From contig NC_042997.1 in assembly GCF_006345805.1 (NCBI RefSeq), positions 109,306,001 through 109,370,000 of the forward strand: 64,000 nt of DNA, read 5' to 3'. This DNA is from Octopus sinensis (lineage: Eukaryota). Numbering within the stretch: the stretch's first letter is position 1; every line of letters begins with the position of its first letter. The position numbers and the translations under genes were made by a program. Of this stretch, positions 5,019 through 62,935 are shown in pieces. The notes beneath the pieces are model-generated. The model was not told the origin of the DNA and searched no databases. It saw nothing but the letters and a program-made list of their open reading frames with translations.

Positions 5019-5942
5019 ATGCGTTTAATGTGGATAGGTCTGCTGTTTATAATGGGTTTGTGCGAAGGATTTCATAACTGCCCTGAAAGGTATAGATTTA
5101 ACCCTCATCATGTCGCTTGTTTAACAAAGTCGCCAAATTTTGTAAAGGTAGTGGACGTAACTCCAGCTGAACAGATGTTAATTGTGAGCATACATAACCT
5201 CTACCGGGAACAAGTTATTCCTAAACCATGCAGCATGTTTCAATTATACTGGGATGTAGAACTTGCTTTCCTTGCAGAGCAATGGGCAAACAACTGTGAA
5301 TTTAAGAAGGTTAAGAAAGAATTAAATATAGCACCTGGCAGATACAGTGTTGAACAGAACATTGGCATGGGATACACCAATTGGGATGGATTGTTGAGAG
5401 TCTGGCATGAAGAAAGGTTATCATTTAATAATTCTGATCCACGAGAAGGTGTTGCAGATTCATATAAAGAGATGATACGGAGCACAACTCATCACATTGG
5501 CTGTGCGGTGTCAATCTGTTCCAATCTCGGTGATTTTCGTGTTTGCAACTACGCTCCTGTTGAAGATAAGAAAGGACCGATTTATAAAGAATGCAACCAC
5601 GAATTAGAGGTTTTCAGGTGTTATGACCAAATTTGTTACAATAGTGGTTACTTGGACCCCGATACGTGTGAGTGTACATGTCTTGACGAATTACATGTAA
5701 TGACCCCGAACTGTACCTTGAACTGTACACTTCCTGATCCACCTGACAAGTGCAAACATGCAGATATTTCTATATGTGCACATTTCAGCACAAAATTTAG
5801 ATGTCCCTGGAAGTGCAATGAATGTAACGTTATTCCCGACTCAATGAGAAGAAATCATGGCTTCTCTTTCATCAGACAACTATTAATATTAAGATGCATA
5901 ATGTTGCTCGTGTTTGTTAGGATTTCACTTTGTAGTATTTAA
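5019..5942 (+). CDS. CAP1: CAP/CRISP-family protein, 307 aa, single-exon (signal peptide, CAP domain, EGF-like, ShKT-like, hydrophobic C-tail)
   Basis: MRLMWIGLLFIMGLCEG signal peptide; HNLYR, LYWDVELAFLAEQWANNC, QNIG, IGCAVSIC, VCNYAP CAP motifs; CYNSGYLDPDTCECTC EGF-like; C-8-C-7-C-8-C-3-C-2-C ShK-like; hydrophobic end. Confidence 0.93.
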   Translation: MRLMWIGLLFIMGLCEGFHNCPERYRFNPHHVACLTKSPNFVKVVDVTPAEQMLIVSIHNLYREQVIPKPCSMFQLYWDVELAFLAEQWANNCEFKKVKKELNIAPGRYSVEQNIGMGYTNWDGLLRVWHEERLSFNNSDPREGVADSYKEMIRSTTHHIGCAVSICSNLGDFRVCNYAPVEDKKGPIYKECNHELEVFRCYDQICYNSGYLDPDTCECTCLDELHVMTPNCTLNCTLPDPPDKCKHADISICAHFSTKFRCPWKCNECNVIPDSMRRNHGFSFIRQLLILRCIMLLVFVRISLCSI

Positions 5943-5979
5943 ATATTGGTCAGGAATACGCATCGTCCCATTTCGTATA

Positions 5980-6212
5980 TCTATTTCTTTACTACGCAGA
6001 AGGGGCTAAACACAGAGAGGACAAACAAGGACAGACAAACGGATTAAGTCGATTATATCGACCCCAGTGCGTAACTGGTACATAATTTATCGACCCCCGA
6101 AAGGATGAAAGGCAAAGTCGACCTCGGCGGAATTTGAACTCAGAACGTAAAGACAAACGAAATACCGCTAAGCATTTCGCCCGGCGTGCAAACGCTTCTG
6201 CCAGCTCGCCGT
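5980..6212 (-). mobile_element. Full-length tRNA-derived SINE, family 1, with 11-bp TSD
   Basis: CATTTCGTATA at 5969-5979 and 6213-6223 flanks the element. Confidence 0.93.
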
Positions 6213-6733
6213 CATTTCGTATACCACCAATGACACTCATGTTCTGCTCGGCCGTAATCGATAGAAAATGCCAAGAAAAAGCAAGTATATGTTCGGATTC
6301 TATTATGCAGTGACAAGAAACCGACGCAATCAAATGACTGAATATAAATAGACCACGTGAAACAAGCGCATAAATAAAAAAAAAAAGTTTTATGAAAAGG
6401 GAGGTAATCACCTATTCCTTGAAGAACATTAACAGCAATTCTCTTCACCATTACGCTATCGCATTAAGGATGTACAAGAAACAGTAATAATGTTGACAGT
6501 TATATTTTACATGTTTCATTTCAGTGAGCATAAACAGTCATATGTCAACCCTCTCTTTTCTCTCTCTCGCGCGCGCTCTCACTGTATATATATATATATA
6601 TATATATATATATATATATATATATATATATATGTAATTAAATAAGGGTAGAAATTGATACTAATCAATTAAAACCAGTGGTCTAGCATATTTTTTTTTT
6701 AAATCCGAAGATTAGAAATTTTTTTATATACAA

Positions 6734-6847
6734 AATTCAGAGGACTGACCACTACACAAATGGACAGCCTATATGCTATATGGCGATTTTGACGTCTATA
6801 TCTAGCATATAGGCTGTCCGTTTTTGTAGTGGTCATTCCTCTGAATT
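6734..6847. repeat. 114-bp near-perfect inverted repeat (45-bp arms, 24-nt spacer) flanked by TA runs
   Basis: Arm 6734-6778 versus reverse complement of 6803-6847: 3 mismatches. Paralogous copy at 18256-18370. Confidence 0.9.
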
Positions 6848-7484
6848 ATATATATATTTATATATTTCCAATCCTGTCAAACAGACACAAGCAGCAAATA
6901 CCAAAAATAAAAGCAAATACTATGGCTATTGATAATTTCGATTTAAAATAACATTAAAACATAAATATTAAATGTTCAAAGAAAGGGAATCATAAAACTT
7001 CGGGGGTATGTTCCTTGTTTTTTGGGGAATATGAAAGGTGGACTTTAATTTTCTGAAATAAAGCAGGCTGTATTAAAATTTGTCGGTTGAAGTTTGGCTA
7101 CATTTCTATTTCTCTCGGTGTTTCTTCAAATTATGACAAATTAAACCTTTTTATATCCTTCTTACCATTAATTAAATAGAACAGTATATCTTTCATTTCA
7201 TTTCTTCAAAACACACACACACACCACACACACACACACACACACACACACACACACACACGCACGCACACGCACACACACACATGCACATACACCTATA
7301 TGTGTGTGTGTATATGCATATATGTATGTGTGCATGCATGTATGCAGGTGTGCATGCTTGGCCATGTTGATGCTACGGGCCAGTTGTTACGACTCATTAT
7401 ACTTGCTCTGCAGAGTGAGGTTTGAGGAGAGCACAAAGTGTTATATTAATTAATGAACAACTTAAGTGAATATTACACACACAC

Positions 7485-60620: not shown

Positions 60621-60704
60621 AAATAGAATTACATCTCACTCCTTTCCTATTTATTGAACCGGGCCATTTGCCAACCGGAATGGGAGTCTTGTCTCCTATA
60701 TAAA

Positions 60705-61160
60705 TATAGGCGCAGACGTGGCTGGGTGCAAAGAAGCTTGCCTCTCAACCACGGGTCTCCAAATTTAGTCCCACTCTGTGGCACCTTGGGCAAGGGTCTT
60801 CTGCTACAGCCTCGAGACCACAAAAGGACTGCGAGTGGATTTGATGGATGGAAACTTAAAGAAGCGGGTCGTATATTTATATATATGTGACGGGGGTGCA
60901 TGTATGTGCATGTGTAAGTATGTATGTCTCCCACCATCGATTGACATCTGGTGTTGAGTTTACGACTCTGTAACTAGCTTAACACCCGGTGCTGGTGTGT
61001 TAATGTCCCCGTAAATTGGCGGTTCGGCGAAAAAAACTTATAGAATAATTTCTAGTCTAAGAGCAAAAGTACTGGAATTGATTCGTTCAACTACAAAAAA
61101 TACTTCAAGGCTGTGCCCCAGCATGGCCGCAGTCGAATGACTGAAACATGTAAAAGATAG
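60705..61160 (+). mobile_element. tRNA-derived SINE, family 2, diverged
   Basis: ataggcgcagacgtggctg head, ggcaccttgggcaagg, ccagcatggccgcagtcgaatgactgaaac tail. Confidence 0.8.
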
Positions 61161-61635
61161 ATGTCATGAATGTTTAAAATGTCTGTTAGGGAATTTGGTA
61201 AAACTGCTGAGTATCGTTTAATCTATGCCGTTTCGACATCTCTCTTATAAACCATTTTGTATCTGCCTTGAAATAGAATTCAATTTATCGCTTTTAGACA
61301 AACCATTCTTCTGAAAGCACAACTGCCAAAATAAGGCATGGAAACGTTCTGGAAGCTAATATTTCTGCTGACAATAAAAAGATTCTCTTTTCGAGTAAAA
61401 TGAGTGAATTTTAGTATTCAATCGCCTTACTCGTATATGATTTAATTACTTTTACAAAGAAAATCTGTCCACGAATTAAAACATTATTTATTCAGAATGA
61501 ATGATGTTATTTAGGATAAATATTATTTAGAATAAATGTTTGAATTCAGTGAGTCATTCATGTGTTATTATTGAAATGGTTCGCAAAGTGGGCTGGATAC
61601 AAACGCTCATTTCTTGAGAGGAAACATCCTTCCTG

Positions 61636-61647
61636 CGTCATATGACG
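61636..61647. promoter_or_regulatory. Perfect 12-bp palindrome CGTCATATGACG made of two CRE/ATF half-sites, about 370 bp upstream of CAP5
   Basis: The palindrome is read directly. Function is speculative. Confidence 0.25.
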
Positions 61648-62011
61648 TGACCTCTGACATTGTTCGTTTAGCGTTGCCGTTGAAAGAAGTTTAAATTTCA
61701 ATTTCTAAGATGCTATATCAAAAGGATTATCTTGGAAGGTTTAATGAACTCCATAAGCATCCTGCTACGCAACTTACAGGTTTGTCAACTAAGAATTTAT
61801 CAAAATAATTTTGTTTAAAAATACATTAACGAACGAGTGTCCAACAAACTTTGATTAATAATAAAAACAATATAGTTGGAATAATGGAGCTTAAAAGACG
61901 TATTTTTTTATCATAGTAATTGACTTGTGTAATAGATATTGAGAATTTTTGGAATGAGAAAACCTTTCTCTAGGACAGAAAAACTGAGGAAGCCTGCCTC
62001 GATTTATTACA

Positions 62012-62935
62012 ATGAAAAACCAAATGACGTCCATGTATTTAAAATACTTAATTGTATTTACAGTGGCGATGCGTGTATGTATTTCGGAAGGAAATTGCCC
62101 CAAAAAATTTTGGCACAAAGAAGAGCACACTGCATGTCTTGAAAAGTCGCCTAAGTTAATGGAATCAATGTTTGTGAGTGAAAATGATAAAAATGCCATA
62201 GTCAACATGCATAATGCTTATCGAAGTAGTGTTAAACCTCCGGCCTGTAATATGTTTAAAATGTACTGGGATAATGAACTGGCCTACATTGCACAGAAAT
62301 GGGCCGATAATTGTGAATATAAACATGATGAGAGTTCTAGAAGAAGTATACCTCTAAAGTATAGCGTAGGTCAAAATATTGCCGCAGGATTCCCGAACTG
62401 GGAAAACGTCATCTATGCCTGGCATTCTGAAGGGAAAAATTATAAATTTGGTGACAAAAGAATGAAAAACAGCGGGCATTACACGCAGATAGTGTGGTCG
62501 ACATCCCTTTTAATTGGCTGCGGAGCGTCACGTTGTTCGTTTATAGGCATGCTGTATGTTTGTAATTACGCTCCTGCGGGAAATACATACGGTCAAGACC
62601 CATACCGACGCTGTCGAACTCAGCGACCTTTGAACGATTGTGGTAATAGCCCTTGTTATAATTTCGGTACACTGAACAGACTTGACTGCTCCTGCCATTG
62701 TTTAAATTATCATCAAATACATGGACCCCGTTGTATGATAAACTGTTCCTATTCTGACCCAATTTTTCCGTGCCGTTTAAGAACTCATGATTCGTGTAAA
62801 TATACAAATGTACGCCCTACTTGTCCTTGGCTATGCGAAGAATGTAATGGCGGATTTTTGTCTCGAAGGACAAACCTGGTTCTTCTTTGTGCTGCGCATA
62901 TTTTAAGGATCATCACGTACTCTGATTATCATTAA
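62012..62935 (+). CDS. CAP5: CAP/CRISP-family protein, 307 aa (start may be at a downstream Met), single-exon, most canonical paralog
   Basis: HNAYR, MYWDNELAYIAQKWADNC, GQNIAAG, WHSE, GHYTQIVWSTSLLIGC (CRISP signature 1), LYVCNYAPAGN (signature 2), EGF-like and ShK-like Cys patterns, moderately hydrophobic tail. Confidence 0.95.
   Translation: MKNQMTSMYLKYLIVFTVAMRVCISEGNCPKKFWHKEEHTACLEKSPKLMESMFVSENDKNAIVNMHNAYRSSVKPPACNMFKMYWDNELAYIAQKWADNCEYKHDESSRRSIPLKYSVGQNIAAGFPNWENVIYAWHSEGKNYKFGDKRMKNSGHYTQIVWSTSLLIGCGASRCSFIGMLYVCNYAPAGNTYGQDPYRRCRTQRPLNDCGNSPCYNFGTLNRLDCSCHCLNYHQIHGPRCMINCSYSDPIFPCRLRTHDSCKYTNVRPTCPWLCEECNGGFLSRRTNLVLLCAAHILRIITYSDYH

Follow-up and report, generated by a model that had tools for sequence, protein, structure and literature searches.

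The stretch analysed here, referred to as the window, comprises 64,000 nucleotides of Octopus sinensis CM016859.1 (about 109.31–109.37 Mb). ORF listing, Pfam and tblastn with both families over the whole window gave seven loci in total, five for CAP and two for calcineurin-B (CnB), each a single unbroken coding block on the + strand, in the order CAP1, CAP2, psiCAP3, CAP4, CnBa, CnBb, CAP5. These results bear out the initial annotation as regards the number, single-exon structure, coordinates, order and strand of all the recognisable genes. They also uphold its designation of psiCAP3 as a pseudogene. An in-frame stop is present in CAP4 as well; two of the five CAPs (psiCAP3 and CAP4) are broken in O. 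sinensis. The features are as follows.

4570–5100, + strand: near-identical CAP1/CAP2 tract, about 99% identical to 16412–16942 (CAP2)
5019–5942, + strand: CAP1, intact single-exon CDS, 307 aa (PF00188, E 1e-13)
16861–17751, + strand: CAP2, intact single-exon CDS, 296 aa (ORF listing, Pfam)
about 27582–28512, + strand: psiCAP3, pseudogenised CAP2 copy (80% aa identity)
31908–32822, + strand: CAP4, full-length single-exon CAP frame with one in-frame stop (32166–32168)
36602–39400, + strand: first CnB tandem unit, the retro-insert flanked by ~0.9 kb upstream and 1.1 kb downstream, homologous to 43273–46916
37487–38289, + strand: CnBa retro-insert, matching the canonical CnB transcript after splicing, -182 to +631 counted from the ATG
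37668–38174, + strand: CnBa CDS, 168 aa
39305–41822, + strand: LINE-type retrotransposon fragment (reverse transcriptase, PF00078, E 2e-29; zf-RVT, PF13966), between CnBa and CnBb
43273–46916, + strand: second CnB tandem unit (blastn blocks; colinear with O. bimaculoides)
44381–45202, + strand: CnBb retro-insert, matching spliced canonical CnB mRNA from -205 to +629
44586–45095, + strand: CnBb CDS, 169 aa
46816–55025, both strands: more degraded LINE fragments and microsatellites, between CnBb and CAP5 (ORF listing, O. bimaculoides comparison)
62012–62935, + strand: CAP5, intact single-exon CDS, 307 aa (Pfam E 1e-20)

The LINE fragment between the CnB copies is missing at the matching place in O. 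bimaculoides, and the LINE and microsatellite stretch before CAP5 is mostly not present there. The cluster extends beyond the window, as O. vulgaris carries a highly diverged sixth CAP-like ORF, also single-exon, ~20 kb upstream of CAP1.

The product of CAP1 begins with a signal peptide and continues with a CAP domain, a Cys-rich C-terminal module of lophotrochozoan type and a hydrophobic tail, a layout typical of the array; the O. vulgaris CAP1 is intact and 99.6% identical. An AlphaFold model of CAP5 (pLDDT 84) has a CAP fold nearest to those of CRISPs and GLIPR1, with a C-terminal helix at residues 279–306. The nearest CAP domains are those of vertebrate CRISPs (snake-venom pseudecin, triflin and natrin, and mammalian CRISP1–4; E 3e-30 by sequence, 1e-15 with Foldseek). 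Unlike the octopus proteins, however, these have no C-terminal hydrophobic helix, and the Pfam Crisp (ICR) domain was not detected in the octopus C-terminal module even at E <= 1. We infer that the intact CAPs (1, 2 and 5) are membrane-tethered extracellular proteins. The mammalian GLIPR1/GLIPR1L1/GLIPR1L2 cluster is likewise a tandem CAP array whose products are membrane-associated through a C-terminal segment (a predicted property in octopus), and GLIPR1 is among the best structural matches of a cluster CAP; however, the mammalian genes have introns and arose independently.

A role for the array's CAP products as saliva or venom components of the posterior salivary gland, with the CnB insertion an unrelated passenger, is improbable. 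CAP proteins have been reported repeatedly from cephalopod salivary glands (PMC12607849, PMC7693380, bioRxiv 10.64898/2026.04.09.716377), the solved structures nearest to the cluster CAP domain are snake-venom CRISPs, and the NCBI orthologs are named 'cysteine-rich venom protein'-like, by homology only. Against this, all intact members end in a hydrophobic stretch predicted to be helical, which suggests tethering to the membrane instead of free secretion, CAP1 and CAP2 no longer have the GHYTQ His, and ω values of 0.15–0.5 do not point to diversifying selection of the kind typical of venom arrays. A literature search found no paper that mentions these cluster genes, nor one that ties them to saliva.

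Relatives with the same architecture were found across Lophotrochozoa, and the nearest ones in three molluscs are multi-exon: a CRISP3-like gene of O. bimaculoides (XP_014790560; 71 kb, at least 12 coding exons, on a different chromosome), a CRISP of Sepia pharaonis (CAE1258453; 75 kb) and a Mytilus trossulus homolog (24 kb). They share with the cluster the signal peptide, CAP domain and Cys-rich module with conserved cysteine spacing, and often also the hydrophobic tail. They differ in having at least 9–12 coding exons over 24–75 kb instead of one and a Ser/Thr-rich spacer before the tail, and are 40–45% identical to the cluster CAPs. Nine intron positions (at CAP5 residues ~25, 54, 84, 115, 159, 189, 207, 243 and 280) are common to the O. 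bimaculoides, Sepia and Mytilus genes, and all nine are missing from the cluster CAPs. In a simple neighbour-joining tree, in which a fast-evolving clade such as this could be misplaced, the cluster CAPs form a single clade (bootstrap 100) whose sister group is the multi-exon cephalopod genes (bootstrap 89). In their UTRs, the cluster CAPs retain no homology to a parent. Nevertheless, the wholesale absence of introns, in combination with the phylogeny, strongly indicates a processed-mRNA origin of the CAP founder. For both families, the case in which intronless genes are the ancestral molluscan state and there is no separate parent is ruled out.

Growth of the array after its founding appears to have been DNA-based. 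The flanks of CAP1, CAP2 and psiCAP3 are homologous, pointing to duplication at the DNA level; CAP2 is a tandem duplicate of CAP1 whose homologous flanks cover 16408–18609. The near-identical tract includes ~450 bp upstream of CAP1 and roughly the first 80 nt of its CDS, with 48–50 identities per 50 columns between CAP1 and CAP2 compared with 22–39 over the remaining CDS, and the CAP paralogs of O. bimaculoides have in common their own variant of this N-terminus. The tract is probably the product of gene conversion over the promoter, 5'UTR and signal peptide.

psiCAP3 retains a start-codon remnant followed by a stop four codons on and has lost its signal peptide; in the O. sinensis assembly its frame is moreover shifted between about 27945 and 27965, a shift absent from O. 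vulgaris, where the start and signal peptide are missing too. The CAP4 stop is real, since the independent O. vulgaris assembly also contains it; the O. bimaculoides ortholog is intact (L001, 3608–4525), with ω of 0.55 between O. sinensis and O. bimaculoides. CAP4 is a recent pseudogene, or else its expression would need recoding. CAP5 is the best-conserved member; its orthologs, likewise single-exon, share 90% of its amino acids in O. bimaculoides and 64% in Argonauta hians, with ω of 0.15–0.35. Judged by such ratios, the intact cluster copies evolve under purifying selection.

The canonical CnB gene (P0006) lies on a different chromosome and encodes a protein that is identical in three Octopus species. 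Its six coding exons span 43–63 kb and are separated by five GT–AG introns (after CDS nt 3, 43, 220, 280 and 465). CnBa and CnBb are 79 and 79.5% identical in nucleotide sequence to the spliced parent, with no gaps at the five exon junctions, and retain ~200 nt of its 5'UTR and at least 116 nt of its 3'UTR; homology ends ~200 nt upstream of the ATG and ~116 nt past the stop codon. Common to all three retrocopies, the O. bimaculoides one included, are the deletion of two codons and a Glu-to-Asp substitution at EF-hand 3 position 12, which point to a single origin. Matches to solved calcineurin B structures are full-length and reach E = 8e-78, compared with 1e-29 for calcineurin B homologous proteins (CHP). 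On these sequence comparisons, a processed-mRNA origin of the CnB founder is close to demonstrated. The proposal of retro-derived founders is accordingly supported for both families, as each has relatives with introns at other places in the genome and only copies lacking them at this locus.

As the initial annotation had stated, neither family shows a recognisable poly(A) tail or target-site duplication; the boundaries of the CnB inserts lie in (TA)n microsatellites. This absence would also be expected had introns been lost without retroposition to a new site, through cDNA recombination with a DNA-duplicated copy or gradual loss after segmental duplication. We regard such a history as highly improbable, as five CnB introns and nine or more CAP introns would all have gone at once, the copies and the intron-containing genes are on different chromosomes, and the limits of CnB homology match those of a transcript, not of a segmental duplicate.

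Retroposition, the preferred reading, probably supplied only one founder per family. The CnB units, identified from blastn blocks of 66–90% identity, reach well past the retro-insert, so that of the earlier proposal of retro-derived and amplified genes the retro-derived founders stand, while the amplification was DNA-level tandem duplication together with flanks. O. bimaculoides is colinear, and the CnBb position there is an assembly gap (a 1.6-kb N-gap exactly where CnBb is expected). The tandem CnB duplication probably preceded the split between O. sinensis and O. bimaculoides; because CnBa is separated from its O. bimaculoides counterpart by a dS of 0.26, above the species-level value from CAP orthologs (0.14), CnBa orthology and the timing of the duplication are not fully settled.

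Both CnB copies retain an intact frame, the MGxxxS myristoylation motif and four EF-hand loops. Pairwise ω is 0.26–0.50, with neutrality rejected in every comparison (p from 0.014 down to 2e-6), and dN is 0.08–0.15 compared with 0 for the parent. By these measures the copies are under purifying selection and evolve far faster than the parent. Their rapid protein change, the demonstrable decay of two of the five CAPs, the failure to find AATAAA or ATTAAA within 1.5 kb downstream of the CnB copies and the failure to find transcript-derived contigs for them might instead suggest that the CnB copies and some of the CAPs are processed pseudogenes that do not yet carry disabling mutations, with function limited to the intact CAPs. 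This is quite improbable given the rejection of neutrality, the retained motifs and frames of 168–169 codons that are intact in three species and two paralogs at dS of about 0.25–0.48.

The view that the two families were captured together does not survive their difference in age. In Argonauta, CAP5 already has a single-exon ortholog (dS about 1.5), which places the CAP founder before the Argonauta split, whereas dS between the CnB copies and their parent is only 0.3–0.5; because the founders differ so greatly in age, the CnB retrocopy must have landed in an existing CAP array. Shared orientation carries little weight, because tandem duplication yields it automatically: within both CAP1/CAP2/psiCAP3 and CnBa/CnBb the copies are direct tandem duplicates whose flanks are homologous too, leaving the orientation of one CnB insertion relative to the CAP array as the sole independent event (p = 0.5), and co-orientation of all seven loci is not beyond chance.

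The second CnB gene of mammals, PPP3R2, is intron-free in its coding sequence. Like the octopus copies, it evolves faster than the multi-exon, highly conserved PPP3R1-type gene that it accompanies, but the octopus copies arose independently in the octopod lineage, where the retrocopy was tandemly duplicated within a CAP array. PPP3R2 has a role in sperm, being required for sperm function (PMC7493031, PMC8536318). By analogy, CnBa and CnBb may serve as alternative regulatory subunits, sensing Ca2+ and pairing with calcineurin A in a restricted cell type.

A more ambitious reading is that the CAP array and CnB retrogenes are co-regulated as a single tissue-restricted module, most likely of the male germ line or sperm, the CnB retrocopy having survived through landing in the chromatin domain concerned; mammalian PPP3R2 plus GLIPR1L1/CRISP would then be a convergent counterpart. 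Besides the PPP3R2 precedent, it could draw on the insertion of heritable retrocopies in germ-line cells, where open chromatin is favoured (PMC5470649), on the persistence of both CnB copies under purifying selection after landing among CAPs and on the GLIPR1-type hydrophobic tail of the CAPs. We nevertheless consider it unlikely: the upstream regions of the CAPs and the CnBs were found to share no sequence similarity, the CAP next upstream (CAP4) is broken in both O. sinensis and O. vulgaris with the CnBs intact, the two families arrived at very different times and their matching orientation is a 50% coincidence. As a rough estimate, the main site of expression has about an even chance of lying elsewhere or of being broad; male reproductive tissue is a tentative candidate and salivary or digestive glands a doubtful one.

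Taken together, it is likely that the locus is an octopod-specific, retro-founded CAP array with a later CnB retro-insertion and tandem duplications. One retroposed copy of a multi-exon cephalopod CRISP-like gene would have founded the single-exon array, which would have grown by DNA-level tandem duplication, with gene conversion at the 5' ends of CAP1 and CAP2 and with psiCAP3 and CAP4 now decaying. Much later, processed canonical CnB mRNA would have been reverse-transcribed into the CAP4–CAP5 spacer, and the insert with its flanks tandemly duplicated to give CnBa and CnBb. Published gene models join pieces of adjacent copies (829 aa in O. vulgaris; 490 and 586 aa in O. bimaculoides), and if transcripts support these models then the single-exon label is incomplete. 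The RNA-based founder, DNA-based local amplification, new promoter and faster protein evolution resemble those of other tandemly amplified retrogene families (PMC5470649), although the octopus locus differs from retrogene families in general in interleaving two unrelated retro-derived families. The locus is a clear but ordinary example of new genes derived from retrocopies.

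The window lies on chromosome CM016859.1 of Octopus sinensis (GCA_006345805.1, 213 Mb) and starts at approximately position 109,306,001. An ORF listing, Pfam searches and whole-window tblastn with both protein families gave exactly five CAP loci and two calcineurin B (CnB) loci, in agreement with the order, coordinates and strand of the initial annotation, and every coding sequence forms one uninterrupted block, as had been claimed there.

CAP-family and calcineurin B loci of the window, found by ORF listing, Pfam and tblastn
5019-5942, + strand, CAP1, CAP-family locus
16861-17751, + strand, CAP2, CAP-family locus
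about 27582-28512, + strand, psiCAP3, CAP-family locus
31908-32822, + strand, CAP4, CAP-family locus
37668-38174, + strand, CnBa, calcineurin B locus
44586-45095, + strand, CnBb, calcineurin B locus
62012-62935, + strand, CAP5, CAP-family locus

The remainder of the window is microsatellite-rich and contains degraded LINE reverse-transcriptase fragments. Those at 39305-41822 and 46816-55025 lie on both strands, are missing at the matching O. bimaculoides positions and represent lineage-specific retrotransposon activity inside the cluster. At 7453-9620 and many other places, long microsatellites of compound type, built from (CATA/TACA)n and (TCTA)n-like units, give rise to spurious ORFs in several frames, the longest of 486 codons. 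The common orientation of all seven loci carries no weight: CAP1, CAP2 and psiCAP3 share flanks, as do CnBa and CnBb, identifying them as direct tandem duplicates and leaving one independent orientation event (p = 0.5). A larger host gene enclosing the block was looked for, but the annotation has none in the 10 kb on either side of CnBb in O. sinensis, nor, in O. bimaculoides, in the surroundings of CAP5 and of the CnB copy; a 57 kb O. vulgaris 'gene' was rejected as a host because it is a chimera of cluster members.

The parent of the two CnB copies was found on another chromosome. This canonical gene, which encodes a 170-residue protein with one and the same sequence in O. vulgaris, O. sinensis and O. 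bimaculoides, adjoins the EF1-gamma gene and spans 43-63 kb. Exon mapping in O. sinensis gave six coding exons, the first supplying the ATG alone, separated by five GT-AG introns (after CDS nucleotides 3, 43, 220, 280 and 465), the first of which is 23 kb long. A spliced-parent construct, consisting of the joined exons together with the genomic DNA that precedes exon 1 and follows the stop codon, aligned in a single piece with CnBa (37487-38289 with parent -182 to +631 relative to the ATG, 79.0% identity) and with CnBb (44381-45202 with parent -205 to +629, 79.5% identity). There are zero gaps at the exon junctions, and all five introns, including the 23 kb first intron, are absent from both copies, which therefore carry ∼200 nt of the parental exon-1 5'UTR fused to exon 2 as well as ∼116 nt of 3'UTR. 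Homology to the parent is confined to transcribed sequence, ending ∼205 nt before the ATG and ∼116 nt beyond the stop codon. A retroposed origin had been proposed in the initial annotation without proof; for CnB, the gapless alignment with the spliced parent and its UTRs supplies that evidence. A poly(A) tail, polyadenylation signals and target-site duplications were sought around both CnB inserts and all of the CAP genes with nothing convincing found; the CnB inserts run into (TA)n repeats at both ends, and at a dS of 0.3 or more a poly(A) tract or target-site duplication is expected to have decayed. No canonical polyadenylation hexamer was found within 1.5 kb downstream of the CnB copies.

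A single origin is indicated for CnBa, CnBb and XP_052830218, the sole annotated O. bimaculoides CnB copy of this kind, since all three lack two codons near the N-terminus, carry a rewritten segment following EF-hand 1 and have, as the twelfth and last residue of EF-hand loop 3, Asp in place of the canonical Glu. The CnBa and CnBb regions remain homologous well past the retro-insert (36602-39400 versus 43273-46916); the pair thus stems from tandem duplication of a ∼6.7-6.9 kb unit. Colinearity between the window and O. bimaculoides extends across CAP4, CnBa, the CnBb flanks and CAP5, with a 1,643 bp run of Ns, on CM046601.1 at ∼7.572-7.574 Mb, exactly at the site expected for the 1.75 kb holding CnBb, which suggests that the duplication probably preceded the split of O. 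sinensis and O. bimaculoides. The ∼10 kb by which O. sinensis is longer consists of LINE insertions, and O. vulgaris shows the same arrangement as the window at 99-100% identity. The O. bimaculoides copy (10001-10507 of genomic segment L001) is the positional counterpart of CnBa, yet is equidistant from CnBa and CnBb (dS 0.26, approximately twice the species-level dS), and the non-coding block around it is more diverged than elsewhere (80% versus 84-88% identity).

Both O. sinensis CnB copies have intact ORFs, and neutrality was rejected in all pairwise CnB comparisons (p from 0.014 to 2e-6), with ω of 0.26-0.50 for the retrocopies versus the parent (dS 0.31-0.48) and 0.35 for CnBa versus CnBb (dS 0.24). 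The canonical genes of O. sinensis (L003, CM016862.1) and O. bimaculoides (L004, CM046604.1) differ at one synonymous position in 513 nt (dN = 0, dS 0.01), and therefore nearly all of the divergence lies on the retrocopy side. This conservation of synonymous sites is unusually strong, the corresponding value for CAP orthologs being ∼0.14. With CAP orthologs as the dating yardsticks (dS ∼0.14 for O. sinensis/O. bimaculoides and ∼1.5 for Octopus/Argonauta), the CnB insertion predates the O. sinensis/O. bimaculoides split and probably postdates the split from Argonauta. Neither a CnB retrocopy nor further CAP genes were found within ±10 kb of Argonauta CAP5, a result that says little because CAP5 and CnB are 17-24 kb apart in Octopus.

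The CnBa and CnBb proteins (about 170 residues) each match two EF-hand pairs in Pfam (E of 1e-26 to 1e-27) and contain four EF-hand loops, of which loops 1, 3 and 4 were located by a loop-pattern scan and loop 2 from the alignment. Over residues 1-168 they match human CnB chains from solved structures with E = 8e-78, compared with 1e-29 for CHP/p22, and the retro-derived proteins are 75-77% identical to octopus canonical CnB. The myristoylation motif M-G-x-x-x-S is present, as a sequence motif only, in CnBa (MGNESS) and CnBb (MGNASS). Two coordinating positions of EF-hand loop 4 are also changed in the O. bimaculoides copy; together with the loop-3 Asp of all three copies, these changes may alter Ca2+/Mg2+ selectivity.

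For the CAP genes, a profile search found the same architecture across Lophotrochozoa (Sepia, scallops, Mytilus, Mercenaria, Babylonia, Lingula, a bryozoan and nemerteans). Intron-containing relatives include an O. bimaculoides CRISP3-like gene (XP_014790560), located on another chromosome than the cluster, with at least 12 coding exons over 71 kb, a Sepia pharaonis CRISP (at least six coding exons recovered over 75 kb, with several short exons missed) and a Mytilus trossulus homolog (at least nine coding exons over 24 kb). Placed on one alignment, these three genes share nine intron positions (CAP5 residues ∼25, 54, 84, 115, 159, 189, 207, 243 and 280), all of which are uninterrupted in every cluster CAP gene. 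The refuting scenario of the initial annotation, an intron-free state ancestral in molluscs with no separate parent gene, is excluded. In O. bimaculoides and Argonauta hians, the CAP5 ortholog is likewise a single exon of 924 bp. In a neighbour-joining tree the cluster CAPs form one clade (bootstrap 100), with subclades (CAP1,(CAP2,psiCAP3)) and (CAP4,CAP5), that is sister to the multi-exon cephalopod genes (bootstrap 89). The simplest reading would be one CAP founder retroposed before the Octopus-Argonauta split, too old for homology to parental UTRs or transcript limits to be assessable, followed by tandem DNA duplication. The latter is seen directly in the flank homologies of CAP1 and CAP2 (4566-7055 versus 16408-18609) and of CAP2 and psiCAP3 (16545-17795 versus 27247-28556). 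On this reading, a whole octopod CAP subfamily would trace to a single retrocopy.

All five loci contain the Pfam CAP domain (PF00188). Each intact CAP (CAP1, CAP2 and CAP5) begins with a hydrophobic, signal-like segment at the N-terminus, followed by the CAP domain, a C-terminal module (∼90 residues, 13 conserved cysteines) and a hydrophobic tail. The AlphaFold model of CAP5 (mean pLDDT 84) displays the CAP fold, an α-β-α sandwich, with a terminal helix at residues 279-306, and its nearest solved structures (Foldseek E = 1e-15) are snake-venom CRISPs, insect antigen-5 (Ag5) and human GLIPR1. A Crisp or ShK identity for the cysteine-rich module was dropped, as searches of the C-terminal segment of CAP5 and of five full-length relatives at E ≤ 1 matched neither Pfam Crisp/ICR (PF08562) nor ShK. 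The cluster genes therefore belong to the CAP superfamily and are not CRISPs in the strict sense; the module is a distinct, lophotrochozoan-wide cysteine-rich region. In alignment A2, the His of the GHYTQ motif is replaced and the GQN motif changed in CAP1, CAP2 and psiCAP3, while CAP4 and CAP5 keep both; the metal-binding tetrad has probably been lost in the former subgroup.

The ω values are 0.15-0.35 for CAP5 orthologs, 0.48 for CAP1 versus CAP2 and 0.55 for CAP4, the last in keeping with recent disablement. CAP4 has an in-frame stop at 32166-32168, which is not an assembly error because the independent O. vulgaris assembly has the same stop; the O. bimaculoides ortholog is intact. psiCAP3 retains a remnant of the start codon followed almost directly by a stop and has lost its signal peptide. 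It is frame-shifted near 27945-27965 in O. sinensis, whereas O. vulgaris has the same 5' defect without the frame shift, and a psiCAP3 fragment lacking the signal peptide also occurs inside older O. bimaculoides gene models. CAP1 (4570-5100) and CAP2 (16412-16942) are ∼99% identical over ∼530 bp (450 bp of upstream sequence plus the signal-peptide codons), compared with ∼60-70% over the remaining coding sequence, a pattern suggestive of concerted evolution, with gene conversion acting on the promoter and 5' end. The O. bimaculoides paralogs share their own, species-specific version of the same N-terminus.

The cluster genes are already in RefSeq, named by homology. An 829-residue O. vulgaris 'calcineurin subunit B type 1-like' protein (L013 10001-67200, OX597814.1) joins pieces of CAP1, CAP2, psiCAP3, CnBa and CnBb, and the O. 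bimaculoides models XP_052830109 and XP_014774225 (490 and 586 residues) fuse CAP2/psiCAP3-like pieces to CAP4. The current models of both species are chimeras of neighbouring copies here, either prediction artefacts or read-through transcripts, and need correction. Outside the window, ∼20 kb upstream of CAP1, O. vulgaris has another single-exon ORF of 295 residues (L013 6826-7713, + strand). It has no Pfam hit on record but aligns to the CAP profile (hhalign: probability 97%, identity 25%), lacks most of the conserved CAP residues and is a sixth, degenerate member of the array.

Searches for transcript-derived contigs of the CAP and CnB copies of the window found none, and the literature on octopus calcineurin and testis, salivary CAPs, cephalopod retrogenes and CnB retrogenes gave nothing specific on their expression and no mention of these genes. 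A Logan contig from another octopod (L006) was set aside as uninformative, since its colinearity with the genome over 2.3 kb, including flanks, fits either genomic DNA or an unspliced transcript. Mammalian PPP3R2 is without introns, and the CnB retroduplication there was independent of the octopus event. PPP3R2 is needed for sperm function (PMC7493031, PMC8536318), and the salivary glands of cephalopods are known to contain CAP proteins (PMC12607849, PMC7693380). The hydrophobic tails predict CAPs that are membrane-tethered rather than freely secreted, which makes a venom role slightly less likely and a GLIPR1-like role at the cell surface slightly more so. Expression elsewhere, or broad expression, has about an even chance of being correct; expression in male reproductive tissue is possible but rather doubtful, and expression in salivary or digestive glands is unlikely.

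The initial observation was confirmed, and its evolutionary reading is mostly correct and stands on much firmer ground than before: retroposed origins and intron-bearing relatives elsewhere both stood, whereas joint capture of the two families did not, because they arrived at very different times. Their residence in one chromatin domain is plausible in principle, as retrocopies have to enter the DNA of germ cells to be inherited and are more apt to survive close to active genes, but besides the difference in age, no upstream sequence common to CAP and CnB genes was found as a hint of co-regulation, and CAP4, directly upstream of the CnB genes, is broken in O. sinensis. It is quite improbable that octopods, as mammals did with PPP3R2, independently evolved a sperm- or male-tract-specific CnB by retroposition, fixed by landing in a germline-active array of membrane-tethered CAPs; the locus would then be a convergent, co-regulated 'fertilisation module' of two unrelated retrogene families, with the CAPs as the counterparts of GLIPR1L1/CRISP.

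The mechanisms at the locus (retroposition, tandem duplication, gene conversion and pseudogenisation) are all well known. The locus provides a clean, datable case of RNA-based gene birth in a cephalopod, in which parent, exon junctions and remnants of the UTRs are all still readable in the case of CnB. If the octopus CnB copies prove to be male-specific, they would offer a convergent case for understanding why sperm need their own calcineurin regulatory subunit.
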